64,000 bases of DNA. It comes from Paragordius varius. Its lineage: Eukaryota; Animalia; Nematomorpha. The number at the start of each line of letters is the position of its first letter. Positions within the stretch are counted from its first letter, which is position 1. Shown here piece after piece: positions 8,497 through 59,681 of the stretch. The notes below the pieces were generated by a model. It saw only the letters and a program-made list of their open reading frames with translations, was not told the DNA's origin and searched no databases. The stretch covers positions 10,478,001 through 10,542,000 of the forward strand of contig OZ176051.1 of the NCBI GenBank assembly GCA_964247055.1. The letters are read 5' to 3'. Both the position numbers and the translations under genes were made by a program.

Positions 8497-11400
8497 ATGT
8501 TAACCTTCTCAACTTCAACCCTAAGTGAAAACGATTGGAAAATTATTTGGTTATTCTCCTATGGCCTATGTATATTCCTAATCATAGTTTGTAATGCGTT
8601 GACACTCTTAACCATTTGGACACATAAAATTTTACAGAGTACGACATATTACTTCATAAGTTCCCTGGCAATTGTATACTCAATCAGAGGTAATTATAAT
8701 AACAAAATTTATATATAAAGTGTTTTTAATATATAATTTTAGTTGTTGAGAATAAAGGCAAACTCATTTTCCTTTTACTTTTGGGATTGCCAAAAACTAT
8801 TCATCTGTTAATAAATCTTAATCCCAGATTAATCATAGATTTTATGTATGCATCTTAATTTGTTTCATTAAGCTAAGTTATGGAAACTTGTACCAATGTT
8901 AACAAATTAAATGAAAAGTTTTTCATTTACCATATAATATAAATTTAAGCAGTTAAGCCTAGTCATCATATTTATTTATAGTGCAGAAGAAAAAAATTAC
9001 GTTTACGAGTTATTAAGAGTGGCTATTAAAAGATTAAGAAAGGAATTATATGGATATGTATTCATTTTGATTATTAACATATTTACCCATAGTAATTTCA
9101 TTAAATTTTTCCAAAATGGATTAATATTTTTTAAACCCTTTTCGCGCTATATAGTCCAAAATTAAAGTTGGTTTTTTCAGCTCAATTACATCCTATGCTA
9201 TTTGTTATAGTACGTGCTTGACACTTAAACCATAACATTAAATGGGGGAAACTATAACCTTATTTTCTGCTGAGTCAGAACTAATGAAACTTTGATAAAA
9301 GTTTTACCGTAACTGTCCAAAAAATCTTTTTTAAACTTGATAAATATTTTTATTTACAATTAAATGAAAAAATATCCAAGTCAAGATCACTAAAATACTG
9401 GAGCAATAATAAATTGAAAAAAATTATCAATTTATTTCAATTAATTAAGTTAATTAAAAGGAAATCGATAAATTCCCCGCTGTGATAACAGAGAGACGCA
9501 CAAAACAGAAAATAAAATTGATAATAAACTACTAATTTAATTTAAATTATCGTGAACCAATCAATATAATTTTGAGTCTCAATGATAAGTCAAAAGATTA
9601 ATAAAAAATATTAAATATAAACCAATCTATGGTTTATTAAAGAAACATTTTGATACCTTTGAATATTTAAAATAAATAAATTATAAACAATATTTTTAAT
9701 TCCTTTAAAATAATATGATTTTTAAAAGATTACATTATTAATAGGATATTAAATTTTTTTGAAAAGGGTTTTGATGCGGAAATTGACCCTTTTAAGAGAG
9801 ACTGGATGTATCTCGGATAGGCCAACATAACCTATTAAGAAAATTATTTTCTATTAATGAAATTTTTTTTAAAATGGACATAACTCCCGGATATTAAGCT
9901 TGTTGTTTCTTATCATTTATTAAGTAAATTAAATAAATAATTTGAGGAAATCAATTATGTTTTTAATGAATTAATTGTTTATTAATTATAAAAGGATAGC
10001 TTACAAAGCTTATATCAACTTAGGGCACACCGGAATTACTAAATTAATTAATGTATTTCGTTTAAATATATATTATATAGAATTAAAATAATAATCATCT
10101 GGTTTTTGTCGCAAATTATTCGGCAAATTTATAAATCATCCAGATATTATGTGTTAACACGCCGTTTGAAACTAAGTTTTTTTACAACCATATATAAATC
10201 AATTTTATGGCTAAGGTTTAGTTATGTAAATTTATAAAAAATAAATGCTTAAAAATCATATATCATTTGATGGCCAAAAAATCTCAGTATAACTATATAA
10301 TAATTAAAAATGTGGAAATAAGAAATTATTTTATTATCCAAAATCTAGAAGTCGTATGTATCTTGTGCGCACATTATGTCAAATTAAAATTATTTTAAAA
10401 TATATATTTTAAGCTTCGCTCCTTTACGTAAACTTTCAACCAAATAATTTGCTATTATGGTGTAAAAGAATTATAACCTATAGTAATTTACTATAATATT
10501 ATATTAAGTTTAACCAATAATCGGTTCAAAAAAATGAATTAAGCTTTATATAACTAAAAATTTGGGTTCGGATTATGAGTGACGTATAATTTTATATAAT
10601 ACTTCTCGATATAATTCGATGCAAAAAACTTCTATCACTTTACATTTTGGATTTAAATTTTTTTATAGTAATATTTCCAAACTATTACTTGAATATTATT
10701 AATATATTTTTCAAGAGGATATAAAAACTATAAATGGACATTTTTAACCGTAACCTCGGTTTTGAATCTAAAATTTCTGAAACCGTTTTTGTTTATTAGT
10801 AGGGTTGCAAAATAGTTTCAACAACAGCTAACTGATTATCTATTATTCCCTGTTAATTATTAATATTTAATTATAATGTTTATATATTCAATAAATTTTA
10901 AGGTAGAAGAATTTTATAAAATTTCGTAGCCAAGCATATTCTTCATATATCCTTTTTATATAATATTTAATATATATTCAAAAAGGTTTTTTTAATATAT
11001 AAACCAAAACATGATATTAACATTGTTAATATTTAATTAAAACACCAATTTTATTTGGGAATTTTCAAAGGGATCTATCCAATATTTTCAGTTCACAAAA
11101 TAATGTTAAATCCACAGCATTATATAAATATTAATTAACGAGAAAATCTGCAATAATCATCTCTATCTTTTTATGTTTGATTAATTAAAAAACTGCTAAA
11201 AATTGACTACTGAAACGACAAAGTCTATTACAAATGACGAGTATGTCTTTGGCGGTCTTTTAATTAAAATATATAGTATAGTATATAAAAGTAGTAGTTA
11301 ATTTTGGAAATGATTATCAAACTAAACAATATATTAATCATTTATAAATCGAAACTTTGATGATTAAAGGCAACCATATTTTGATATAGTCTAGCATTGA

Positions 11401-14400
11401 AAATTGTTTAAAATGCATAGCTCTTTTGAATTTTAATTAACATATGCGCTTCTATGCACTTACTTAATTAATGGTTCCTATTTTTAATAAATGTTAAGAT
11501 GCGTTTTCGGGAAAACGTTAAAATTTTTCTAGCCTATTGCTATGAATTCCGAGTTGTTTAATCCCATTGTTTGAATGCCACATTAATATTTGAATGAGTT
11601 TGCACTTTTTCCGAAAATGGTATGAGTGAAAATATATTACATCTTTTTTAATATAAATGGGGTATAGTTACAATATCGGGAATTTAGAATTTTAGCTTTA
11701 GAAAATAAATTTTTGTTTAAGCATCATCTAACAATCTAAAGTCAATTTTTTAAGCATACATATCACACTAAACCCTGGGTCTAATACTTTATAAGGTATT
11801 CGTTCGGTTTTGTACATTTTTAAACTAAATATATATATTATATATGAATGTGATTTGAATGGGCTGCAAAGTTTCGGCTCTTTCAGAAACTCCTAAACAT
11901 ATCTGGCCAATAACAAGCGCCAGATCAAAAAAACATTTAGGATCCCTGGATTTAATTAAACTATTTTTATAGATAATAATGGGGCATATGCGAATTTTCA
12001 CAAATTGTCTTAAAGCAATCATATTTATTCTTTGATCGATTTTGTATGTCGTAAAATGTTTTTCTAAATTAACATACTGAATGCAGCATTAAAAATATAT
12101 GATTTATTAGGAAAAGTATTTTTGAGCGTGTATCACATTTATTCTGGATTATTATTTATATTGTCATCAAAAATTAACAATATTTTATTGAAGAAATCCG
12201 GATAAAAAGTTTTTAAATAAAATATAAATATCAGATACTGCTTTTTTATAATTATCAGTATAATTTTTAGATAAATTTTCTTCTATTTAATTAATATTTA
12301 TACGGGGGAAAAATGATAAACATATAAATAGTTTAGGCCAAAAAATATATCAAAATTTTGTATTTTATGGATATAATGGGCAAAAATTATTTTACTAAAT
12401 AATTAAAAAAGAACAAATTCAGTCCTCACAAGAATACTGTCATTTTTTTCTCCTATTTTTCGAATAAGGAAAAAACTATTATGGATGGAGAATATTCGTT
12501 GGCGCAAAATACATATAATATTGATGATATTTTTATATTATATATATATATATATATTATCCGTTAGGTTTCATGATACCGATGTATATTGCATTAGCAT
12601 TCTACCCGCATCTCTTTAGTCCATTACATAAATGTAGCCTGATTATGTTTATTTCCCTCATAAATAGCTTAACAGGTTTTTGTGGAGCTTACACTAATAT
12701 GGGTATCGCTGTTGATAGGTATCGTTCCATAGTCCAATGTACAGTTATGCACAGTGGTTCCTCACCTGATAAACGAAAAAATCACAAAACGAATCCAATA
12801 GAAACCAGCAACTCCAATAAAAAATTTAATTTATCAAAGTTGGAATGCGTCTCAAAACTCAATAATATAAAATATGGTATAACTAATACGTGTCTCATGT
12901 TTTTGCCCATACGATCCTCGCCTGTAAAAAGTAAGAAAAAGATGACGCGTGGCGTTTGCCTTAAAATAATTTATGGTATTTGGTTATGTGCCCTATTATA
13001 TTGTCTACCCGAATTTTTATTACTGCTCACTAAGCGAATAAGAAGTGGCCAACCCATGAAACATAAGTTGGGCCAAATGCACCTTAAACAATTATACCAA
13101 CCCCTTGAAATGGATATGAACCACAAAGCTAATGCATTACGACTCCATGTACCATTAAAGAAATCCGGCGATGGATTTAAAGAATCGATGGCAAAAAAAC
13201 TTCAAACTATAATAGACAAACCACAAAACCAGTTGTTGTCACAAAATTATTCCTTCTATCATGATTTGCCACAAGTTATAGGGACATCGCTCTTTTTTCC
13301 ACAATACATACTTATCTTTTCAAATCCGCATTCCAAAGAATCTCCCGAGATAGCATTTTTAGATAAAAACGGTAGTCAAGTCAATGCAAAGACAGATAAT
13401 TTGGCATTATCTGCACTATATTCAATCAGGAATTGGTATGATGGGTCCAAAATCATGCCTTCTGATAATAAACATTTCCATAATAGGACCGTTTTAAATG
13501 TCGAAAAAATTTTCCCGAATCCTAGCACTTACATTACATATAAGTGTGATATCATAGTCAATGATAAAACAAACCCAATAAAGACAAAAGATAATATATT
13601 GATAAAGCATCATTTGTTTAAATGTGTTGACCCTATACTTTTTGACCATGAAAGATATGTCCGTATCCTGGGCAAGCTATTTAAACACAATCACTTTGTA
13701 ACAAATTACATGTGGGATAAATATCGGAGACAAACAATCGAAACAGAAAAAAGGTTTAAACGATCTCCTAAATCCAAAAATGGTAATATATATTCTAACA
13801 TTAAACGTAAATATAGTAACGCAAATCAACTCGGTCAATATGATATGGATTTGAAACAATCACATTTACCTAATAGAACAAGTATAATTAAAAAAATACG
13901 AGGGAAAATTGATCTCAATAGTATATGGCTGAAGAAAGATTATAATTATCCATTCATGCCTTTTATCTTTTGTTTTAATTATACGCGTGCTAATACTAAT
14001 AACATTATTTTTGCGATCCGCCGTCCTACTTATCCTTATCCAATGAATGGAAAATATGAAAATATTATGAAAAATATTTTTCAAGATAAAAATATTATCA
14101 ACTATAATCTATACCAACTTATTCTTCCATACCATAAACACAAGTCTAAAAGTTTCAATAATAATGATGCTGATGATGATAAAAATGAGGGAAAATGCAA
14201 GGAAACATTTTTCATGACAAATTGTTACCACTTGTCAAACCAAACATGGCAAGATAAATCTTGGTTTCAAAACAATTATAATTGTTGTAATATTACAGGA
14301 AACTACGGTTGGACAAGCCAAAAATCTACTGTTCATTTAAATCGTACAACAATGTATTATTATTATTATTATGTAAACGTTTCCTCTATAATTAATGAGA

Positions 14401-17400
14401 TAACGAAACTGAAAAATAAGAAAACGAATGGTGCTAGTAGATATAAGAAACAGAGATTACGAAATAACGCACTTATCATTATGGATGATTGTGACAATAA
14501 TTTGCTAACATTACGGTATAATGTTTGCAAGGTAATCTACTGCGATATGCATGATGATAGATATCAATGTAATCATAAAACAAAAATTTCTTCACACATC
14601 TTAAACAGAATCGCTCGCGATGATAAACAGAGATCACCAAGAGCTGTAAGTGATATACCCCTGTTTGGTACAATACCTTCGAAACAAAGAGCAATGGCTT
14701 CAATAAAAAGTAACCAAGTTTCATTTTTATATTTTGTAATCAATCTTTTATTGAGAGTTATCGTAGCTATAAGGCATAGTAAAGAAATATAATATGAAAT
14801 ATATTATAAAGTTAGTAGCGAACATTTAAAAAAGTCTGTACCTTGGGTTAACTTTGAGCTGCCTTCGTCAGGGGCCAAATATAGGGGTGTTATAATAAAA
14901 TACATGTTTACGTATTTTATTAAGAAATAATCTATAATATAAATATTAAAATTAATGAGATTTGTGTTGCTGTCATTATTTTTTACAAATATTTTACTCA
15001 CATTTTCGTAAGTAGATGTCACCATAGAAAGTTTGGAAATTATAGTGCTTAATACAGCTCGAGATAAACCATTTTTGATTAAAGCCCTATTAAACTATGC
15101 AAGACTATTCAAGGGGCTTACAAGATAGGGGGAGGGGAATGGGTATTCAAAAAGGAAGGGATCGGAATCAGGGTGTATTAATTAATAATTCCAAATATTA
15201 TTTTTACCATGCGACCATTAACGATCAATCAGTGGATGAATGCATATTTAACACATAATATGATAAATGTTTAGGAGTTGGAACAAAAAATTCCCAAATA
15301 AATTGGCATTATTTTTAAATAATAAATTACCATTTTTTTCTGAAGGTTTAATCAATTAACATAGTTTTTTAATTTTGACTAATTTATTACAAAACGGTTT
15401 GCCATCAAAAAACCATAATTAAATTGTATTTTTCAGATTTTAGGTTCACTGTGAAATTGTTTGCCCAAATATATTTACAATTTTAGACAAAAGGGGATGT
15501 GAAATGTTTAAAGCAGTGATTTCTAAAAGTGCTTTTTTATGGCCTTAAAATATTTATTTGATTAGTTGTATTTGAATATAAATGTCTGAAATGTGTCAAA
15601 CAGCTTTGAATTTTTTATCGGTATTATATGGTCCTCGGTTTAAATTTTTTTAGTGGGTACCACTGGCTTGGAGCTTGCCCTTCTGAATTTATGATTGTTC
15701 ATTATACACAGGCTTTCAGTTGTAATAAACGTTAATCCTTCAATGAATATCGCTTTTTAAAATGTTCAAAAACATATAAATAATTTTGTGTTAATTTATT
15801 TAGCAAAAAGTTCGACCATATTGAATGGTCAAAATGATTCAACGTTTGGTTTCATAGTATACCTCAATGACACAGAACTGTTTTATGCCATATCAAAGAC
15901 AGCGATTAAAAAACTTCGGCACCATCTGCAAAACATAATTGGTAGCAATGAATATGATAACTTTGATATATCACCCCAAAATCAAGTAGACAAAGGATTT
16001 TTGCGAACTGGATTCATATCATCTCTTAAACAACAAATAAATAATAGAAGTAAGGAGAATAAAAAGGCTAAAATACCCACATCCCCTCTAAACTATGAGA
16101 TTGCTCATGAATGCTTACCCAGTGTAGTCCACAATATAGTCATTTTAAGTATCCACCTTATCATTGGATGTACACTACCCATAAGCATAGCATTTATCCT
16201 CTATATACTCACTATGAAACATTTATGGATGAATAACATCCATTTGGATACCGAGAAACCGAATGAGTTGCGAAACTTACAGGTAATATTCATTTATTTA
16301 TCCTTAAAAGTATTGCATATAATAACCAACTATAAGTTTTATATAAATAAAAAAAATGTTAATCATATAAAACAGTTGCTATTAGTGTACATGTGGTTAT
16401 TTAATTTTAAATCAATATTATAAAAAATTATTTAGCTGATCTCTTTTACATATTTTAATTCCTTCTTATGGCTTACCAGCATTTAGCTCAACATTTTTGC
16501 ATTCAACATCATTATTTTTTACTCGATCAAAAAATTATTGATTAAAAACTTTAATTCAATTAAAAATAAATGATAAGGAACAATTTTGATTAATAAATAA
16601 TGTTTGTTCATTTAAAAATAATTTGTAGCTTGTAATAGTTTTAATAAAATATTTTACTCGCAATAAAAATTTAGCGATATCCTGATAAAAAAATTAATCA
16701 TTTTAAATTCGTCTATCTTATTAATGAATTATAAGCAAATGGAAAATTATTTTTTTTAATATTAACACCCGATTAGAACAGTTTTTAGTTTCGTTTCTGT
16801 TTTTTTCAGATACTAATCGGTTCAATTTAAAAATATTTTCGGCAATTAAATAAAGATTAGGTTCCATTTGAATAGGCCCAAAAATTATAAAACGCAAACA
16901 AAACTCATTAAGGCTTTTTTTCGAAATTCTGATCTCCTTTTTAGGACAGTTTTTTATTTTGGAAAAAAAGTTTAAAAATCAAATTTCTAGATTCTTAGTC
17001 TATGTTAACAATTGAAATACTAGTAATGGTTTAATAGAGTTTCATAATCCCTAATATTTAAGCGATCTAATTGAAAAGTGTTTAATGAAAAGGATTGTAA
17101 TATTATTTGAATAAAAAATTTGACTTAAACAAAAAAGTATTAAGCTTGGTTAAAAATTCTGAAATTTAATTATATTAATATTTATTTCAACAACCACATA
17201 TGTTATTCCCCCAATAAGTGTTCTACTTTTGACTAGTGCTCTAATTGTTATTGGTATTTACCTTAATGTTTTCCCTGTTTAGATTAGGGAATAAAACTTT
17301 TTATATGTATGTACAAATTAAATTTTATTTATATTTTAGGTGTAAACTTTAATCAATCAATTAGAAATTTAAATTAGTAAGGTGTGGAAAGATACTGTCT

Positions 17401-20256
17401 GTGAAAGTGTTTTGGTTTATAGGCTGGTAAATTAATAAATTATTTATAAACTCTCTCGTGAAAGGTAAACATAAAGATACCTTTTAATTGAGACGAGCAT
17501 TATCACGTTGTTATTTATCAGAAAATGTCGGGTGATTATTGATTTTTTAAGTCCAATGAAATGTCACATAAATCGTAATTTAATTATTTGCAACTCTAAC
17601 ACTGCGTCCATCGGGGAGTATAAAAAAATAACCACAGGAAATATTTATTAGCTGATAGGAAAATAGGATTATTATGGTGCTTTTGGCTTTTACGAGTCTA
17701 AAAGTGATTTACACTTTGGTTAATGCTCCATATCAGAAAATGGTTATATTAGCGCATATTTATTAAAATAATTTTTTTGATAAATTCTAAATGCTTCATT
17801 CCGAAAATATCGCTAATCATTAGCTGTATAAAAAGCATAAAAATGTTTTTAAAAAAAATTATAGTTGTGAGCTCGAAAGTCCCAAATTTTTTCGCCCTCC
17901 TAAAATGGGTTAGTTCTCTAAAATAAACCCAAAAATGCCGATTGCGCGATAAAAATAATAATTATATATTCATTTCGATATCAACTAAAAATATTTTTTA
18001 AAATGCATATTTTGCAAAAATATTGAAGCCCACTTAATACTTTAATTTTAAAACATGATTGAAACGGTATTATAAAAACTCTTAAGACATTGTAAAAACA
18101 CTTTTTATACATATTATATGATGATTAACATTCAGTTCAAAATTTTAAATTACAATATTAGTAAATATATATTGCTAGAAAGTTATCAATTATTACCATA
18201 TAGCATATGCAGCACAGAGATTTATTTTTGTCTAATAAGAGTAAAAATACAAAAAAATAACAATAAGCCAATAATACTGCCCTTTTTTATATGCTATTTG
18301 GCAATAATGAATAACTTTTACCCATGTATACTTACTCATACTGTAAAAGTTCGTTTGTTATAAAATTTTGGTGCAAAAACAATATATAATTGACATAATT
18401 TTGAAGAATATCCAATATTTTAATTCTGAGGTGAATGTTCATCATCATTTATAAAAAATGTGTTCTTATGGTAGAAAGCGTTTTAAACCGTTTCCATCAT
18501 GCCTCGAAATAATGTGAAGTAGGCTTCAACAAAATTTTACTAAATATTAAATTTAGTTGATATCAAAGTTTAGCATATGTTTAAAATTTTTATCGCGCAA
18601 CTCGGCATGGTAACTTTTATTAGTGAACTAGCCTATTTTTGCAAAAAAATGGAACTTTATTGTTTTGTTTTTTCATATGTAATTTATAATATGGTTTAAT
18701 GATATCTTTTGAATTGATGAATTTAGCTTTTACCAATTTATTTAAATAAACGTGTGCAAATTTTGCCAATTATTAATATGGAGCACTTACCAAAAAAGTG
18801 TAAATAACTTTCTTAAATAATTGTGAGGGCCAAAATCAAAAGCGCCATGATTATCCTGATTTATATTTCTATCAGATAATATATATTACTCCAGGTTATT
18901 TTTTTGTGGACACTATATAATATAATGGATTATTGTTTTATTTTAAAACAATAAATGTGGTGATTATTTAATAGTAAAATGTAAATAAGTTAATGAGTAC
19001 TTGCTTGAAAAATTAATGAATAAAGCACTTGAATATTCTGGTAGGTTTCTACTAAGTTGTCATGATTATGTCATTATACTTGATTCAAAGAAGATAACAT
19101 AACTTAAGCATAACTATTTTCTATAGGTTTTATAAGTTAGCCTCTAAGATTTTTCGCGCACTGTGTATAAAAATGAATCCATTTAATTTTATAATTATTT
19201 TATCTTAGTATTTAGCTATATCTCGAAGCCTTTCAGCCATCAGAATGATGTTAGCTCTGTTGACACTTTATGCGGTGTGCACTATCCCTTTCTATTTGGT
19301 AGCATTTTTGGAGGTGTTTGACCGCTTAGATGTCAATTACAATTTTATTTACCTGCAAAACCTGTTGATTTTGACGGATCATTGGTTACATATTGGTCTT
19401 TACGTATATTTCAATCACACCTTTCGTAAATGTTTCCTAGAAACACTAAAATGGTTATGGTTAAAAACCCGTATACCTATGGCTCTTTCACTATGTGGCT
19501 TTCCAATCCCTCAAAATATTGAATATCAACGGACCAGGTCACAAGATTCTACTTATAGGCAACATCGTAAGAATGGCAGGACCTCATCGTTATACAGCAG
19601 AATTTTGAGGTTTGGCATAGTAACCATGTATTGAACAAAAAAATATGTTATTAGGATATACTTAAATACTTGTAAATAATTTTTAAACACCATTGTATTT
19701 TAGAATTAACCGAGAACATCCTTCATTCAGTTTGTTTCAAGGGCGAGCCGTTAAAAGCAAATCTCGTTTGAGTGATTTGCTTAACATGAACCCGACAATA
19801 TTTTTACATCCAGAAAAATCGGATTATGAGGAAACTGAGATGAATATTAAGGGATTGTCAGAAGAAAATAATAAAAATTTACTAAGTTTTCCCAAAAGAA
19901 GTAGAACGGTTTCTTTTACCCATTCTATTGTGATAAACGAAGAAGACAAGCTACAATCCTCATCTTCATCATCCAGAAAACATGATAGTTTAAAAGATTC
20001 GATCGGGCCATATTTAATTAAACCTGATCCCAACTCGAGTAACAACAAATTATACCAGGATAAAACTACAGTAAAAACTGATGACAGTAGCGAACCATTT
20101 ATATCAGGGCAATCTAAAACATTGGTTAAGCTCATGCCAAAATCTCACACTAGCAGGAATAGCAGTATAAATTTGAACAATATAAAAAATATATTTGTAA
20201 AAACTAAAGCGTCTCAACTCCCAAAAATACTTATTACAAGTCCAGAAGATGAATAA
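8497..20256 (+). CDS. Class A (rhodopsin-like) GPCR, neuropeptide-receptor-like, with giant ECL2; ~1255 aa
   Basis: Exons 8497-8689, 12568-14709, 15804-16282, 19209-19609, 19704-20256. All junctions GT-AG and phase-compatible; 3768 nt total. TM1 YGLCIFLIIVCN; TM2 TTYYFISSLA..GFMIP; TM3 IAVDRY; TM4 IYGIWLCALLYCLP; ECL2 Cys HEC; TM5 GCTLPISIAFILY..HLW; TM6 YAVCTIP; TM7 HIGLY; helix 8 FRKCF. The exon 2/3 junction is the least certain. Confidence 0.85.
17599..18916. mobile_element. Tc1/mariner-type MITE with ~450-bp TIRs (complete copy, in GPCR intron 3)
   Basis: 17599-18060 is the reverse complement of ~18450-18916. Termini TA|ACACTGCGTCC ... GGACACTATA|TA, family consensus TA|CACAG(T/C)GTCC..AAATAACCTGA. 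No transposase inside. Confidence 0.75.
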
Positions 20257-24283: not shown

Positions 24284-27200
24284 TTATAGTTCATCATTTT
24301 GAGCTAGGCGCTTTTTCCGTTCTTCAAACTGCTGAACAAATTCGTCGTGATAATCATCGTTTTCTGGTTTAGTGTTGAAAGGTTTATAGTAATCGAAAAT
24401 AGCATCAGTATCATTATCAATTTTGGCTTTTTTGTTGGATAACATATCATCGGCTTTGGGGATTGGTGGTCGACCTGAATTAGTTTTTGACATTGTAGCC
24501 GAGTCTGTGGTTTTAAACGTTGTATCTCGGTAACTATTCTTATGCGTTGTGCTAGTATCTGGAACTATTGTAGAACCAGTCGTATAATAATGAGGCTCAT
24601 TAGATCTAACAGAGCCCGCCGCATACGACTCATCTACCACTTCTATTTCAACGTCCTCCTTGTCATTACTATCAATTTTATTGGGTAATGGCTTATCCTT
24701 ATGACTTTTGTCAGTATCCTTTTTAAAGCTTTCAGAATTGTCTACAGTTTTAACGGTAGAGACGTCTGGTGCAGGGATTGTGGTGAATGATTCATCATTT
24801 TTTGCTTCCATTTTAGTTTTATCACTTTTCTTCTTTTTCTTCTTTTTGTTTTTCGCCTTTTTCTTTTTCTTATTTTTGAGCGGTTTACTACTGTTGCGAA
24901 CTTTTATAGTGGCTCTCTTCATATCTTCAGCTGACATGTCATGTTCAATTTTCTCATCTAAAACCATGTTACTCATGTAACCCATAATTTTGTATTTGAA
25001 TCGATATTCATTGTATAAAGCGTCCAGTCTCTCTTTTTCCTCATCTGTAAGCCCATTCTAAAACATATCCATATAAATATAGAAATTAAATATTTTGTTA
25101 TATATCATTTATAATTTTTATACAGCGGCCCCTTCCCCCATTATTTCCCCGATTGTGGGAAGTGCATGGCTCAATATCCGAACCATTAGTTTAATATATA
25201 TTTTAATATTAAGTAATAAAAATCATAAATTTATTTTTAAGTAGAGAAATAAAAAAAATTATTTAATTTTCTTTTTTGGCTTATTTCAAAACACAACAAA
25301 CTATAAATAGTAATTTATTATAGATTTAACCTAAATACTAAGGCCTTTTAAAATAGTCCATGATGATCGGGTTAAAATTTAACGCTATTTATTTTATAAC
25401 AAAATACAGCGGGTCCCACGTTCCATTTCAATTTTTTAAAACAGGCGCGGTTTTATTAAGATATTACAATTTTAAAATTATGTTTGTTGCCAAGGAGGGC
25501 AGTATAACTTCCTATTTTACAAATTTGCCTTGCTGACTCATTTCGGTTTTTCCATAACGTGCTTTTAATTAGGTATTTGTTAGTGATTGTGTTGTGTATT
25601 CACTTCAAATGTTCATACTGCTTTGGTACCACCAGCACAATGCATGGTTTTTAGCCGAAGCGATTTGGCATTGGTCCTGAGAGACCGGTTTGCAAAGGTG
25701 AGTTTTATTTAAAATATAAAGCCATTTCTTATCACCCTGTTCTAAATCAATGAAATTTTTTCCTTGACTGCAGAACATTAGTCACTTAGCGAATGATTTG
25801 ACGTCCATTCAAATGTAGAACAATTTACTTAGTTTTTTGGATTTTTTCATGACTTGTATACAATTTTTGATTGTTTTTTGTGATACATGTATTGCTTCTG
25901 CCGATTGCCGTTAGTTTCAGTTGCATAATCATTCAATAAATCCTGCATTTAAGCGTTTTTGCAATTGTGTCAGAGCGCGCACGCCTTTTCACATGAAATT
26001 ACAACTTTTGATATTCGAAACCATATTTTACTACAGTATTAATGAATAGAGTATGTTAACCACATATGCTAATTAAACGATTACTTTCAACAACCTTATT
26101 CTTCTGATGGCTCTGGTACTGCAAATGTTTTTTTTTTCATGCACAAAATTTGTCCTGATTACTGAATAACACTAGTTTTTGGTTTAAATATGAATGTTTG
26201 TAGTTTATTGTTAGATGAATAAAATGGGATTTACATCATACTCTCTCTGACGTTATCTCTTAGTTACACCCCATAAAAATTTAAAAATGCGCCTGATATA
26301 TCCAATTATGAATACAAAATAAATAAATATATTGCAATGCAAATATTCAAAAATCGAATTAATAAGTTAAGTAACCAAATTTAACCAAATTATCATTGCA
26401 TTCATTTGGGTCAGTCGTGTTCTTGGCAACTGCTCTTGATGCGTCTCTTCCCGCCATATGAAACATTGGTCCTCCCGGACTAAAATGCTCTATTTGTATA
26501 AAAAATGTGCGTAAATTCATTCCAAATTAATTATTACTTTTTATATATATAATAATTTTGTATTTTGAATAAATAAATCAACATACGTCGCTATAATAAA
26601 AATTCATTTAATTTTTTTATTACCGTAGTCGGATGTCACATCGAATACTACTCCACGGATGGATATATACACCGGTTCGTTGAGCTATATTTATGTAATA
26701 AAAATGAATATTCGAGAATTTTTGGAAAATAAATAACAAGGGACTAATTGTTACTAAATAGTGTTTTTTAGCTAAAATTACATTAAGATGGTGATATTTT
26801 TAAATGTAATATAGTCAAGAATCACACTGCTTAGAAAAAATAATCGTGTAAACTATTAGGATATATACAATTTACAAATTGTTAGTTTCAAATAATAAAT
26901 ATCGGTTTTTAGTTTAACGAAATATACATAATTAATCTTAATTTTTAAATACTGCGCAAAATAGAGATTTTTTCGATTTTGACTGATAGAAACACATAAT
27001 CTTTCTCACTAAGCACTAAACATTTATCATTATAATTATAGAATTAAAATGCCACCCACAATGCTATTAAAATTTAAACATCAAAAGTTTAATTATCTAA
27101 TTAATATATAAACCTACATTCGAGCCATCGAATCGTGCCAAAAAGGGTTCGGTAAATATCATGGTAGGTTGATTATCACTCGATGGTTCCATGTGAATTT

Positions 27201-43817: not shown

Positions 43818-45500
43818 TTATCCGATATTTCCGTAATTGTAACCCAAACCTACTCCTGCCCCATAACCAGTCGGAATTGACGGTGGAAAATACCTTAAAG
43901 GTGCAAGACCGACTGATCCATATGCTCCGAAATTCCTAATACCTCCACCTCCTATACCCTGAGAAGCTGCTATTCTGTTCCCTGCAAATTCCAAGTTTGC
44001 TAAACTATTACCTATACTTGGGGCAAAAGATGTACCCCCGGGTGAAAACGGTATGTTGTTATAGAAAGCCATGTTATTGTAACGCAGTCCGGCATTCGTA
44101 AATGCTAACTGATTGATGGGATTTGAGCGCATAGCTAGTAGGCTGTTGAAAGCATTGTAAGCTAATGGATTCAAAGCTGGGTTTATAAAGGGCAAGGTTC
44201 CAGTACCTCCAAGCATCATAGCTGCTGGATTTGCAAAATTGGAATTCAAAAGATTATTATTATTATTCCCGAATGCCATATTAGGTATGCCAGGTATAAG
44301 GCCTATTCCTGTGTTTGCGTTCGCTAACATAACGTTATTATTATAAAATGGTGAATTAAGCGGCACCATACCATTGTTCATAACGTATGGGTTGAGCATG
44401 TAACCACCGGTGAGGGGATTTGAGTTTCTTACACCTGGCCCTCCAAATCCCTGGCTGCCAGCATACATACTAAACGTTGGGAGATAGGAAATACCTCCTT
44501 GGATAGGATCATTAATCATAATTTGTCGGCGTTGGATAATGGTTGGATCTAAATTACTTGAATTACCATTAGGATTCGTATTATTCTGCAACATTTCATT
44601 ATTGTTTTGTATCAAGTTTGTGGATTTTCGATTTGAATGTATATCGCTGGGATGCGATGGCGGCGAATCTAACATACGAAGGCGTTGTGATCTTGATTGA
44701 GGTTTTAAGTCACGTTTGTGAATTTTGAATTGGTAATGAAGTCTCTATGTAAAGCGAAAAAGGATATTTATTTTTCTAGTTTTTTCAATTATTTATTGAT
44801 TGATTTTTTTCAGAGTTTTATTAAAAATATAAAAACTGTCTATAATTTATTCCTATCCAATTAGCACACCGTTATTCAATATGGATATTAAATGAATTTG
44901 CTGTTAATTCAATCATTTAATATAGCATTAATTAAAAATAATTTTAAATATATACCATATTATTAAAAACATATTAGTTACTAAAATTTTGGATTTTTGA
45001 GTTATAGATGAATAAAAAATTTAAAAAATTATTATACCATTTACAGTTCAAATTCACCCTGTAACAGTTTATATTCACCCTCGAACAATTCGAATTCACC
45101 CTAAAAATAAATTATGTGTTTTTGAAAATATAACTCATTATTAATATGAAATATATCTTTATGGCATAGTTTATTATTTTTTCAGTATTATTTTAATATA
45201 AAATAAAATATTATTTTTTAAAAATATATAATCTAGTTAATTTTTAAAACATATAATTTATTTTAGGATGAATTTGAATTGTTCAAGGGTGAATTTAAAT
45301 TGTTTAAAGGTGAATTTGAATCGTAAATGATATAATAGCTATAAATATGGATAACTAGTAATTATTACCTTGCTATTTTTTATATTCTGAAAAATGTTTG
45401 ATTTTTCGTATCCAATGGTCCCTCGTTTGATCATAATTTTATAAATTAGGCGACTTTCCATTTTTTCTCCTATTAAGGAAGCCAGCTTATCACAGAATAT
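43818..45500 (-). CDS. Orphan Gly/Asn/Pro/Met-rich low-complexity protein; 5' exon(s) not identified
   Basis: Last exon 44744-43818 (acceptor CATAG, extends ORF 43818..44675 by 23 codons). Upstream open exon 45500-45369 is bounded by AG and GTAATA in phase 0. An 858-nt GC-enriched open frame in very AT-rich DNA. Confidence 0.7.
45031..45336. repeat. Palindromic MITE with 3x ~21-bp subterminal AATTCACCCT repeats per arm
   Basis: ATTATACCATTTACAGTTCAAATTCACC ... GGTGAATTTGAATCGTAAATGATATAAT. Confidence 0.8.
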
Positions 45501-56489: not shown

Positions 56490-59400
56490 TCAATCTTTGT
56501 TTTGTTCAATTTGAGCTTGAGCAAGTTTGAGTATCAAACTACGTATATAATTTCTTTTCTCAGTGCCTATGGTTGAAGGAAAATTCCAATGTTCTTGACC
56601 AAACTCTTGACGAACTTTAAGTTTTAAATCGGTAAGTGTAATTAAATTTTTTGCATCTCTGTTAAACTCAGATAAAGATGTATGCTTATTATCATTCGTT
56701 ACAATTTGTAAGTTTTCAAAGTTAGGAGGATATGAGAAAAACGTTTCAACATAATGCAACAAATAAATGCCACAATCATGAAAATTATCTTGTTGAGCCA
56801 CGTGCGGAAACAGACACCTGGTATTGAACCGGTTGAATTTTATAAGGAAGTGCGATTTTTGTAGATTTTTTCCCATTGTTTTATCTTTTACGCTTAAAGC
56901 GCCGTTATTTTCACATCTATTACCACCATATATATTATTCCATTCTTCGTTTAAATAAGCCCTTAGATGACGACTAATTGCAAGGCTTTGGTATGTTCCA
57001 GGCTTGTACATTGAATCAAAAATGAAAATAAAGGTGGTGGGATCAATAACAGGGGATTTTGAGTTTGACCGTTGTTGATTATCCGTTTCTATTTAGTATA
57101 AAAATATTAAAATTTAATTCGCATACTGTTTTTCATTCTTATCCATCATTTCCAAAGAATTTAAATATTTAAAAGTTGTAATGAATATAAATGTTTTAAT
57201 ATATTATGATAATCGAAAATTTTGAAATGTTTGATAAACATCCAATAATAGTGGTTTTATTGACGTTTTGAAGAAAATGCTTTTGCTTAATTAGCCCCAA
57301 CAGAAGCAAAATCAGTAAATGGTACATTATTATAGGCATTTAGAGTGACTTCTAATTTAAGAATCATCCTATAAAAGGGTGAGAAAAAATAATAAATATA
57401 TAAATTATCATATTTTTAACTCAATTCCCTTTTATACGGTTTAATACACTAAGTTTTTACATAATTGAAATGAGTATATTGGAAAATCCAAAAATAATAA
57501 TTGAAGAATTTTTCGCTTAATAAATAATATTTGCGGAAATTGTGTGGCTTTATGTGATAAGCAAATTAATATGGAAATTAATAAAAGAAAAGGGGATAAT
57601 AGAAACCGGTGCCAAACTTTGACAACTAGAAACCGTTTGAAACTAACCTGGTTTCATAATTCCTAAAACTATCTTAATTATAGTTTTAAAGTTTCTAAAA
57701 CTACCCTGGTTAGATCTTAATTTTTAGAAAAACCTGATTTCTGCTAAGTCAGCCGCGCATATAAACCTCGTCTTTCAAAAATTATATATCGCTGAGGGCT
57801 TGGAAAATTTTAAAATCACATAATTCTTAGTTAACCGGAGTTTGTTTGACCAGAACCAGAACTGGATTGGTTTAAAAAAATTAAGTTCTTAAATTTTATT
57901 ATAGCATGTATGTATTTATTGACTGTGGCATATTCCCTTAATTATGAAAATATAAAATGATTCGTGAGCTAAAAACAAATTTTTTCTTAAATTAAAATAT
58001 ATTAATTTGTTAAAATCTACCAAATTATATAACGCAACAAACATTAATCAGTTTGGTACTTTCAATAAGGATATATTTGACCGACAGTATAGTTGATACT
58101 TTATAACTATATCAAGATAGTCAAAAAAATATATGTATATATGTACCATGTCCGTTAATTATATTTTGAGGGAGCATGATTATAGCTACAAACCAGTGAG
58201 AATCCTCATTGATGGGTATGATAAGGAAACGCCTTTCAAAAATGTTGATATGTTTAGTCCACTTTTTAACAGCCGAATGGATGTCAGGGCCCAGTATGTC
58301 TCTTTCATTGTCCACAATCTTATCAGCAGTAAAAGGTTTTGATTGTGACAAGGTAGGTGCTTTATTTGTTTCTATTTGTTGTTCTTTACTTTGTTTATCA
58401 ACTAATTTTGTCTTGTAGTTCGATAAAAATGTGTCATAAATATTTTGTAGTCTGGGAAATGGATCCTCCCTCCTACGCTTTTCCATAACCTTATCATAAA
58501 TAGTATCACCATTACTCTGTTGTAAATCATCCATTGATGGTGTGTTTAAAGGTTTAAACATGCTTATTGTCGATGAAGGTGTTTTATGCATATGATGTGA
58601 ATTGTTGGGTGAATTAGGTACTGTATTATTAATAAATAATTTTGGGTCGGTTGATTTTTTCTCACATCTTTCATTTAGGGATTCAGTTGATGATTGTGAT
58701 CTAACCATATAGTTTGCAGGAGGTGTTAGTGTATCATAACTTTTTTCACCAATTGTTGACTTATTTTTATTTTTTTCTTTCCTTAAATTATCACGCTTAG
58801 CTTTAACAGTTGACATAATTTTAGTAAAAAAGAATGAATTAAAAACGTGTATTTGACAGCTAAAACACTTTTTAAACGTTTCATATGCCAAGTATTTAAG
58901 ATAAAATTCAATGATAGTGTCATTCAAGAATTCGTTGGGATATAAACAATTTATATCATTATTCGTTATTTCAAGCGATTCTTTGATTCTTTTGGCGTCA
59001 GTCGTGCCATTTGAAGTTTGTATATCAAATACATGTGTTAATGGTTGTTTCAAAGGCTTTTCTAGATCGGAATAAATATTATTTGATGAATTCGCAGAGG
59101 GTTGAGATGGGGGAGATTCATACATTAAAGGTAGTGCGTTAAAATTAAAATTGTTTTGCTCGATATTTTGTATGGTTTCAGCCAAAATAGCATTTCCTGA
59201 TACGTTTGAGTAAAATTTGGTTATTAATAGCGAAAAATTCCCCCTCAATGTTTCATTTGGTGTGCCAACAGTAATGTATATTTTATATATACCGTAAAGT
59301 TTGTAAAATAAAGATGATTTTCTAAGAGTTATGAATATTTTTGTGTTATTAGAGCCTTTTTCAAAATCTGTTATAACATTTAATGCATAAAGTTCATTGT

Positions 59401-59681
59401 TTTCTAAAGCAATTTCAATAGGTAAGCCGTTTACTTGAGTCCAAAATTTTAATTTTGATAAATTCTCGATAATTAAACATTTTTTCTCGCCTAAAATTTT
59501 CAACGGAAGTGTTTTATCCGATATATCAATAAAGGATGCGTCTAGAATCGAAAATTTTTGATTAGATTGGTCGGTAGTTGAGATAGGTTTATATATTAAT
59601 AGCGGACGACTATACGTTTTTACTTCTTTGAATATAGCTAAATTATATGATGTAAAACATACTTAATTTTTCTTGCAGCAT
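56490..59681 (-). CDS. SENP6/7-like SUMO protease (Ulp1/peptidase C48), ~702 aa
   Basis: Exons 59681-59663, 59637-58147, 57088-56490 (2109 nt). Motifs EFLNDTIIEFYLKYL, FNSFFFTK, VKKWTKHINIF, catalytic His (EDSHWF), Asp (FIFDSM) and Gln/Cys (QQDNFHDCGIYLLHY). The first micro-exon/start codon is less certain. Confidence 0.9.

Follow-up and report, generated by a model that had tools for sequence, protein, structure and literature searches.

A candidate gene for a divergent rhodopsin-family receptor with an outsized second extracellular loop in the horsehair worm Paragordius varius

Introduction

The longest open reading frame in 64 kb of Paragordius varius DNA (the window, the whole stretch analysed here) runs for 739 codons from 12573 to 14792; the runner-up has 460 codons. 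It spans transmembrane helix 3 (TM3), an enlarged second intracellular loop (ICL2) and TM4, and then continues as a stop-free, non-hydrophobic run to 14709/14710. Does this run belong to the second extracellular loop (ECL2) of a class A receptor, and if so, is it a binding domain, a sequence that is spliced out, the remains of a broken gene or filler? To our knowledge, nematomorph receptors are essentially unstudied. In our reading, the gene at this locus is intact and encodes a highly divergent orphan GPCR of the rhodopsin family (class A, peptide-receptor-like) with an inflated ECL2; we assign this reading a probability of about 0.6.

Results

The receptor gene on the + strand would comprise 5 exons between 8497 and 20256 and encode a product of 1231 aa; its splice junctions and expression are predicted from the sequence (Table 1). 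Six codons before the ATG at 8497, the frame is closed by a stop. Beginning at the start codon and continuing to the final residues, the 5-exon model is colinear with an uncharacterised 7tm_1 protein of Gordionus sp. m RMFG-2023 (LOC135930825, XP_065323686 / CAK9293717; 806 aa, here P0003), with 48% identity over 324 core columns. By tblastn, exon 1 matches P0003 residues 7-61 (E 1.6e-12), exon 3 residues 400-478 (E 8e-14) and exon 4 residues 466-548 (58% identity, E 3e-27), and the per-exon search of exon 2 with the Gordionus relative gives E 2.3e-17. The exon 5 tail has two motifs in common with this relative, LLNMNPTIFL and the C-terminal PKI(L/Y)(I/V)T.

Table 1. Features of the predicted receptor gene, in positions of the window; a slash within letters marks a predicted splice site.
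Feature	Position	Strand	Details
Exon 1	8497-8689	+	start codon, N-terminus of ~14 aa, TM1 (N1.50 in CNALT), ICL1, first half of TM2 (SLAIVYSIR)
Exon 1 donor			CAGAG/GTAATT, phase 1
Exon 2	12568-14709	+	2142 nt; rest of TM2, TM3, ICL2, TM4, first 559 codons of ECL2
Exon 2 borders	donor at 14709/14710		acceptor CCGTTAG/, donor AAA/GTAACC, phase 1
TM3	in exon 2		Cys3.25, and DRY at 12714-12722
ICL2 insert	~12744-12929
TM4	~12951-13028	+	GIWLCALLYCLPEFLLLL
ECL2, exon-2 part	13029-14709	+	stop-free, 11 Cys, 9 N-x-S/T sequons, one RFKR furin-type motif
(TAT)6 run	14355-14372		encodes YYYYYY
Predicted intron in ECL2 coding region	14710-15803	+	1094 nt
Acceptor of this intron	15803/15804		TTATTTAG/, brings the frame back, phase 1 on both sides
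Exon 3	15804-16282	+	last ~104 ECL2 residues, HEC (16106-16114), TM5, start of ICL3
Exon 3 donor			CAG/GTAATA, phase 0
TM5	~16124-16204	+	GCTLP, P5.50
Exon 4	19209-19537	+	end of ICL3, TM6 (CTIPFY), ECL3, TM7, helix-8-like FRKCF
TM7	in exon 4		TDHWLHIGLYVYFN, without NPxxY
Exon 5	19704-20256	+	C-terminal tail; stop at 20254-20256

Exon 2 alone matches the Pfam family 7tm_1 (PF00001) over ORF residues 116-158 with 26.3 bits (E 6.4e-6) and exon 4 alone with 17.5 bits (E 0.003), both under the gathering cut-off. P0003 matches the same family with 88.2 bits (E 8e-25) and its paralogue P0005 with 110.2 bits (E 2e-31). Because the receptor is colinear with these two 7tm_1-matching proteins, it is placed in class A. 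Seven TM helices occur in canonical order. Kyte-Doolittle peaks mark TM1 to TM6 at model residues 23-41, 57-84, 87-105, 193-222, 890-908 and 953-971; TM7 (~residues 985-1005) is below the threshold and was placed by alignment. Aligned to a Limulus RYamide-receptor-like protein, N1.50 (CNALT), Cys3.25 (HKC, residue 87), DRY (AVDRYRSIV), W4.50 (GIWLC), the ECL2 Cys (HEC, residue 882) and P5.50 (CTLP) occupy canonical positions.

Outside Nematomorpha, the best matches of the family are receptors of the peptide type (NPFF, tachykinin, PrRP, RYamide). NPFF receptor 1 matches P0005 across TM1-TM4 with E 1.4e-14, and the Limulus protein gives E 7e-9. Identity to these receptors is only ~25%, and orthology to any named receptor was not found. 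The family appears to be restricted to the phylum, with relatives detectable among 1.84 billion proteins only in Nematomorpha, namely the two Gordionus receptors.

The class A fold is not defined by D2.50, CWxP and NPxxY, typical as these are of the class. Here D2.50 is replaced by Tyr (LAIVY for LAxxD) and W6.48 by Thr (CTIP for CWxP; Ser in the Gordionus relatives), and TM7 reads GLYVYFN and leaves 7 alignment columns empty at the place of NSCYNP, N7.49 and P7.50 being absent. Both Gordionus relatives carry the same changes, which are therefore a trait of the family.

The receptor and P0003 have in common the motifs LAI(V/A)YSIRGF in TM2, C(T/S)(I/V)PFY in TM6, TDHW(L/F)H(I/V)GLY(V/L)YFN in TM7 and LNMNPTIFL in the tail, as well as two intron positions, one of phase 1 in TM2 and one where ICL3 meets TM6; one of the two is missing from P0005. 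P0003 starts at the same place as the ATG at 8497 and also has an oversized ECL2, but it lacks the 62-aa ICL2 insert, and neither its ECL2 nor its C-tail is interrupted by an intron. A tblastx comparison of the 10-kb Gordionus flanks with the 64-kb window gave no match, and no shared DNA was detected. The receptor is the closest counterpart of LOC135930825, its best and almost sole match, and probably its orthologue, although synteny of the flanks gives this no backing.

In the model, ECL2 covers residues 219-882, that is 664 aa. Exon 2 supplies 559 of its codons and exon 3 supplies 103, ending with the ECL2 Cys, and one further codon is split between the two. Within the loop, Kyte-Doolittle values over 19-residue windows stay below 1.3, so no TM-like segment appears, and there are no internal repeats apart from the (TAT)6 run. 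The whole loop contains 12 Cys and 12 N-x-S/T sequons, the latter near the ~8 expected from composition by simple arithmetic, and ~33% of its residues are hydrophobic or aromatic. The sequence-only reading had described a class A GPCR with TM4, TM5 (GCTLP) and HEC just before TM5, and all these landmarks lie where it had placed them. Its estimate of ~610-670 aa for ECL2 encloses the modelled length, and its ~65 extra ICL2 residues become 62 when counted against the relatives. The N-terminus of ~14 aa also holds, given the upstream stop and the matching start of the Gordionus relative.

The loop sequence is coding. Its exon-2 part has 0 in-frame stops versus 23-81 in the other five frames, and 1000 shuffles have a mean of 44 in-frame stops and a minimum of 25; the flanking introns contain 0.077-0.087 stops per codon. 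Codon position 1 is depleted in T in the loop, and likewise in the C-tail. In the sequencing runs that contain this stretch, all of them DNA runs, neither lineage shows frameshifts or stops in the loop: in a diverged strain (runs X4/X5; ~4-6%), the exon contigs differ in length only by +6, +3, -3 or 0 nt, within 13339-14654, while intron indels of 1, 2 and 5 nt are not multiples of 3. The 26 listed, best-supported SNPs of the loop fall on codon positions 1/2/3 as 11/3/12, with the second position depleted, and no stop is gained among them. Fifteen are non-synonymous (1607 sites) and 11 synonymous (385 sites). The resulting pN/pS of ~0.33 is rough, as it comes from the best-supported SNPs only, and with transition bias the synonymous excess is only marginally significant.

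The mature ECL2 would be much shorter if one or more in-frame introns within 13029-14709 were spliced out, or if another donor/acceptor pair were used. The loop centre (~13700-14500) is intron-like in GC (0.25-0.30) and gives no frame-specific composition signal by a crude score. A frame-compatible alternative pair also exists, GCT/GTAAGT at 14645/14646 with AAAAAG/ at 15811/15812, and would remove only 22 residues. However, at 0.08 stops per codon, 100 codons would stay open with a probability of ~2e-4 and 270 with ~1e-10, and the length changes of the diverged strain keep to multiples of 3. The four predicted acceptors are all T-rich (...TTAG/), and none of compatible phase was seen inside the exon. 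We regard a much shorter loop as improbable; by sequence logic, the 2.1-kb exon should be free of small in-frame introns.

The predicted intron within ECL2 raises the possibility of a dead or truncated gene, in which a 1.1-kb insertion at 14710-15803 broke a TM3-TM5 exon, leaving a four-helix product that ends at 14792 and, further on, relic exons. In both Gordionus relatives, TM3 through TM5 indeed lie in one exon, without this intron. The interruption holds a high-copy repeat around 15446-15642, with a read depth ~13x that of neighbouring bins, and is flanked by the 7-nt direct repeat AAAAAGT (14705-14711 and 15805-15811); terminal inverted repeats were not found at 14710-15803. Its donor, GTAACC, is weak, and canonical microswitch residues are absent from the receptor. 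On the other hand, the interruption has GT...AG ends with matching phases, and a 14709/15804 junction would join the two parts of the loop in frame. The downstream exons are intact open reading frames with 40-58% identity to P0003 up to the final residues. The insertion is older than the ~5% strain split, yet no stops or frameshifts are seen in either lineage, and the motif losses are family-wide and therefore not signs of decay. A dead gene thus seems decidedly improbable.

The loop has no match by phmmer among 1.84 billion proteins or among PDB sequences, and Pfam gives none for the loop and three sub-pieces at E up to 10. The 739-aa ORF finds only two matches among the 1.84 billion proteins, both from Gordionus and both aligned to the TM3 end (residues 1-58). 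A language-model feature search placed the loop nearest to parvovirus VP1/VP2, anellovirus ORF1 and papillomavirus L1 (score 0.93, 193/256 features), as if the loop came from the captured capsid gene of a virus, such as an endogenous jelly-roll protein resembling those of parvoviruses or anelloviruses, inserted into ECL2. In the same search its recognition value of 1223 is in the range of shuffled sequences, where high scores mean little, and PF00740, PF02956 and PF00500 are unmatched at E up to 10; together with the empty phmmer searches, this makes a captured capsid extremely unlikely.

Discussion

The main question is then what kind of loop this is. The sequence-only reading had proposed a domain that replaces an N-terminal ligand-capture module. 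Indeed, a folded ectodomain on ECL2 that captures ligand, mediates adhesion or supplies a tethered ligand, in the role of an N-terminal domain, would suit a domain-sized loop of this Cys and sequon content next to so short an N-terminus. The share of hydrophobic and aromatic residues, about one third, is not typical of disordered regions, second-position changes are depleted, and the reading frame is kept in the diverged strain. But no homologue of any kind turned up in Pfam, the PDB or the 1.84 billion proteins, and the number of sequons is near that given by composition. A single-sequence AlphaFold2 model yields no confident fold; its mean pLDDT of 30 is uninformative on foldedness, not negative. 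The loop shows no significant similarity to the 245-aa ECL2 of P0003 (E 0.45), and a conserved binding domain is disfavoured because it should stay alignable at 48% core identity.

The family argues in the same direction. The ECL2 of 664 aa compares with ~245 aa in P0003 and ~20 aa in P0005; the N-terminus is ~10-14 aa in all three members. Since P0005 pairs a short N-terminus with a ~20-aa ECL2, a short N-terminus and a long loop are not coupled. Enlarged loops at other positions, such as the ICL3 of ~140 aa in P0005, argue for a general process. We therefore do not retain the replacement of an N-terminal module, and consider a folded functional ectodomain unlikely, if still credible. Of the unusual architecture that had been claimed, the long coding insert, the short N-terminus and the enlarged ICL2 stand, and the ectodomain is not supported; relatives with the same insertion are found only insofar as P0003 also has an oversized ECL2, as the loops are unalignable and that of P0005 is short.

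A more specific version, which we hold to be slightly more doubtful, is that the ~660-aa ECL2 is a structured module evolved within Nematomorpha for ligand capture or autoregulation, with possible processing at RFKR to a disulfide-linked two-chain receptor.

The pN/pS, the 12 Cys and the proportion of hydrophobic and aromatic residues are also compatible with a folded domain that is too lineage-specific to be recognised.

The loop looks like a lineage-specific, filler-like inflation rather than a recognisable binding domain. For this inflated receptor, we propose that the stretch of ECL2 from the TM4 end up to the disulfide Cys45.50 grew to ~664 residues of unique, fast-evolving, lineage-specific sequence, and that ICL2 gained its 62 residues in addition. 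The seven-helix core would do the work of the receptor together with the final ~10 residues of the loop, which the Cys3.25-Cys45.50 bridge ties to TM3. The rest of the loop would be an extracellular, probably glycosylated appendage, mostly filler in function. With TM5-7 encoded further on, its frame has to remain open, while its sequence may be only moderately constrained. Its origin is most likely progressive insertion and expansion, as GPCR loops of this AT-rich genome seem tolerant; we consider it less likely that an existing domain was acquired.

If transcribed as modelled, the gene extends the size range of class A ECL2 from ~170 to ~660 residues. An insert on the TM4 side of the disulfide Cys tests how much polypeptide the ligand-entry lid can bear while the receptor folds and traffics. 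The ECL2 and ICL3 loops of ~140-245 aa in the Gordionus relatives point to a tolerance, or a drive, for loop inflation in horsehair worms. The joint loss of D2.50, W6.48 and NPxxY in the family raises the question of how such receptors switch on. Were the loop a structured module, no larger ectodomain carried on a loop would be known in class A, and it would be one case of a phylum-wide, functionally meaningful gigantism of GPCR loops. If it is neutral filler, its chief lesson is one of care in annotating genes and in inferring domains from length alone.

C3aR is the textbook long-ECL2 receptor of class A, and it keeps the canonical microswitches. An anaphylatoxin-receptor type of long ECL2 was considered for the nematomorph receptor and rejected: C3aR and C5aR are absent among the best 60 PDB matches listed for the family, and the insert is upstream of the Cys. 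The ECL2 of human C3aR is ~172 aa long, flexible and mostly unresolved by cryo-EM; its disulfide cysteine C172, in the resolved 159-175 hairpin, precedes the insert (PMC10518620). Both receptors are class A members with a short N-terminus and an outsized ECL2, that of C3aR being glycosylated. They differ in that the C3aR insert lies downstream of the disulfide Cys, whereas the nematomorph loop is ~4x longer and carries its insert wholly between TM4 and that Cys.

Structure of the receptor gene

The window is AT-rich (GC 22–33% in 2-kb bins), and its longest ORF, at 12573–14792 on the + strand, comprises 739 codons, the second longest having 460. It lies over the second exon of a five-exon model of a class A GPCR gene. 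The predicted introns are GT...AG throughout with matching phases, the acceptors follow a T-rich pattern ending in TTAG in 4 of 4 cases, and the predicted product has 1231 residues. Splicing and expression of the gene are thus far predictions; the sequencing runs found to contain the stretch are all DNA, and the four aligned to it cover introns and exons alike. No part of the stretch occurs in the runs tagged as potentially RNA. A sequence-only reading had described a class A GPCR with a giant second extracellular loop (ECL2), and its coordinates and landmarks were all correct against the five-exon model.

Predicted features of the receptor gene and its product (window coordinates)
Feature	Position	Strand	Description
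Exon 1	8497–8689	+	five-exon model
Exon 2	12568–14709	+	five-exon model
ECL2 intron	14710–15803	+	1094 nt, predicted; within the ECL2 coding region
Exon 3	15804–16282	+	five-exon model
Exon 4	19209–19537	+	five-exon model
Exon 5	19704–20256	+	five-exon model
Switch-residue changes	8660–8689, 19270–19290, 19395–19420	+	same in P0003 and P0005
N-terminus			about 14 aa
TM1			CNALT
TM2			SLAIVYSIRGF
TM3			Cys87 and DRY
ICL2			62 residues longer than in Gordionus relatives
TM4			GIWLCALLYCLPEFLLLL
ECL2			664 residues, without hydrophobic segment; C-terminal end HEC (Cys882)
TM5			GCTLP
ICL3			short
TM6			CTIPFY
TM7			TDHWLHIGLYVYFN
C-terminal tail			about 215 aa

ICL2 is usually a short G-protein contact, and therefore the 62-residue insert is unusual by itself. 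The insert is in-frame at 12744–12929, is rich in N, K and S, includes a short hydrophobic patch, ITNTCLMFLPI, and is missing from both Gordionus relatives. An in-frame mini-intron is rejected as its source, since neither candidate GT/AG pair has a length divisible by 3 (203 and 193 nt).

Elsewhere in the window, two − strand ORFs (56493–57011 and 58124–59503) match the Ulp1/SENP C48 peptidase domain with E values of 2.8e-6 and 6.9e-14. Both probably belong, as exons, to a single SUMO-protease gene whose N-terminal region is long and of low complexity. Two other − strand ORFs, one of 285 aa rich in N, G and P (43821–44675) and one of 233 aa rich in K, D and S (24287–24985), have no Pfam match and fit a genome with frequent low-complexity coding sequence.

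Relatives and family identity

The 739-aa ORF gave no match in a word-indexed search for homologues. Exhaustive phmmer comparison of this ORF with 1.84 billion representative proteins gave two, both covering the TM3 end only and both from the horsehair worm Gordionus sp. m RMFG-2023. This worm has been described as G. montsenyensis, with a GC content of 26.9% and RNA-seq hints in its annotation (bioRxiv 10.1101/2023.06.26.546503).

P0003, the full-length 806-aa isoform of Gordionus LOC135930825, aligns with the model over its whole length, both ends included. The TM cores display 48% identity over 324 columns, and common motifs are found in TM2, TM6, TM7 and the tail. The P0003 gene has three coding exons and shares with the model the intron positions in TM2 (phase 1) and at the ICL3/TM6 border; the gene of P0005, a 502-aa Gordionus paralogue, has the TM2 intron alone. 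Neither flank synteny nor shared DNA was found between the window and the Gordionus locus, and the window is therefore probably from a different nematomorph species. The model is likely the orthologue of LOC135930825, judging from these protein and intron alignments.

Beyond their own isoforms, searches with P0003 and P0005 reached only one Limulus RYamide-receptor-like protein, the best match outside the phylum (E 7e-9). Both contain Pfam 7tm_1 (E 8e-25 for P0003 and 2e-31 for P0005), and their closest solved structures among the matches listed are the NPFF, tachykinin, PrRP and β-adrenergic receptors. Sequence comparison places the receptor gene in a small, highly divergent orphan class A family, detected in Nematomorpha only.

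Alignment to the Limulus protein demonstrates that N1.50, DRY, Cys3.25, the ECL2 Cys, W4.50 and P5.50 are kept in all three nematomorph proteins. All three carry Tyr at 2.50 and Thr or Ser at 6.48, so that D2.50 and W6.48 are lost, and a 7-residue gap in place of N7.49-P7.50. Since these losses are common to the three proteins, they are a family trait and not decay, which speaks against a dead or truncated gene, a reading we consider very unlikely. The retention of DRY despite the loss of D2.50, W6.48 and N7.49-P7.50 raises the question of how such receptors activate.

Coding status of the loop

The loop is coding, as seen from four independent signs: the open frame, the codon-position asymmetry, the frame kept between strains, and the SNP pattern. 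The 558 loop codons of exon 2 contain 0 in-frame stops; the five other frames have 23–81, and shuffles average 44, with a minimum of 25. The introns of the gene have 0.077–0.087 stops per codon. The frequency of T rises from 0.22 at the first codon position to 0.39 at the third, an asymmetry resembling that of the hydrophilic C-terminal tail and differing from that of introns.

Strains were compared with four DNA runs over window 11900–17800, of which X4 and X5, from a different sample under the same species label, diverge by about 2–6%. Within the loop, the length differences of the X4/X5 contigs are −3, 0 (including 6 gap letters), +6 and +3 nt, and the intron indels among those listed are of 1, 2, 1, 1, 1, 5, 2 and 3 nt. 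The 26 loop SNPs among the best-supported listed are distributed 11/3/12 over codon positions 1/2/3. They comprise 15 non-synonymous changes over 1607 sites and 11 synonymous changes over 385, giving a pN/pS of about 0.33, a partial value since it is computed from the best-supported SNPs listed. None of the 26 introduces a stop. The loop frame must stay open because TM5–7 lie downstream, and this need by itself suffices to explain why the ORF is long and why indels come in multiples of 3. Some additional constraint on the loop, such as solubility, glycosylation or avoidance of aggregation, is suggested by the moderate pN/pS.

The loop centre (about 13700–14500) has an intron-like GC content, and a crude sliding composition score, too weak to separate frames, gave no frame-specific signal there. 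Amino-acid composition against base-composition expectation was not diagnostic (r of 0.86 in the loop against 0.88 in the TM core).

Over 11900–17800, X1 and X4/X5 stand about 2–6% apart under one species label, with two haplotypes in one sample, a pattern that points to cryptic species or deep population structure. A 2026 preprint reports misidentified species among the open data for Chordodes.

The predicted intron inside ECL2

The ECL2 intron is absent from both Gordionus genes, in which TM3 to TM5 lie in one exon, and is present in the diverged strain (one X4/X5 contig). It may be a gained intron. A short repeat within it, at about 15446–15642 with loose ends at 15589 and 15632, has a read depth about 13-fold the local one. 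A 7-nt direct repeat, AAAAAGT, lies on both sides of the intron, and the frame is also kept if the intron and one AAAAAGT copy are removed. The gain could be transposon-derived; no terminal inverted repeats of the intron were found, and the direct repeat could be a chance product in DNA so AT-rich. Hidden splicing that yields a shorter mature loop is improbable; the alternative in-frame splice pair 14645/15812 would make the loop only 22 residues shorter.

Origin of the loop

P0005 combines an ECL2 of about 20 aa with an ICL3 of about 140 aa, whereas ECL2 reaches about 245 aa in P0003 and 664 aa in the model. The N-terminus is about 10–14 aa in all three, hence its shortness is no correlate of a big loop. 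The proposal that the loop replaces an N-terminal capture domain is not borne out, the short N-terminus being also found in P0005 with its small ECL2. To the extent that DNA can show it, the architecture put forward by the sequence-only reading is supported; the functional ectodomain role is not supported.

The loop has no match in Pfam (whole and in pieces, E up to 10), in PDB sequences, in the 1.84 billion proteins searched with phmmer, or in the rest of the 64-kb window. It has no significant similarity to the P0003 loop (E 0.45) and no internal repeats apart from (TAT)6. With a net charge of +47 it is basic, it is rich in N, K and I, and it contains 12 cysteines and 12 N-x-S/T sequons, where composition predicts about 8 sequons. 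AlphaFold2 prediction of the 558-aa exon-2 part without an alignment gave a mean pLDDT of 30, which decides nothing on fold. We consider it unlikely that ECL2 bears a real, folded ectodomain.

A language-model feature search of the loop points to capsid clusters of ssDNA viruses. However, its recognition value is within the range of shuffled sequences, a captured viral capsid has no sequence support in the phmmer, Pfam or PDB sequence searches, and we give this origin almost no credence. The same feature search with the P0003 loop gave no usable match.

Gradual, lineage-specific loop inflation is favoured over domain acquisition, with a probability of roughly 0.6, because the loop changes rapidly from one relative to the next and because family members differ in which loop is enlarged. 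The insert lies entirely on the stretch from TM4 to the disulfide cysteine. About the last 10 residues before TM5 would stay tied to TM3 and could still form the lid of the binding pocket.

A furin-type dibasic motif, RFKR followed by S, is encoded at 13704–13715 (model residues 444–447) and is single in the loop, where about 0.2 such motifs are expected from composition. If the site is used, the receptor would be cleaved into two chains joined by the TM3–ECL2 disulfide.

Comparison with known receptors

Searchable literature yielded no report of a class A ECL2 longer than that of C3aR, nor of nematomorph GPCRs. The C3aR loop, the long-ECL2 case, is about 172 aa, flexible and largely unresolved, and its insert is C-terminal to the ECL2 cysteine (PMC10518620). 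The model ECL2 is about 4 times longer, its insert is on the opposite, TM4 side of the cysteine, and the two loop sequences are unrelated. Inflation of receptor loops may extend across the phylum, and this receptor would be an extreme case of it.
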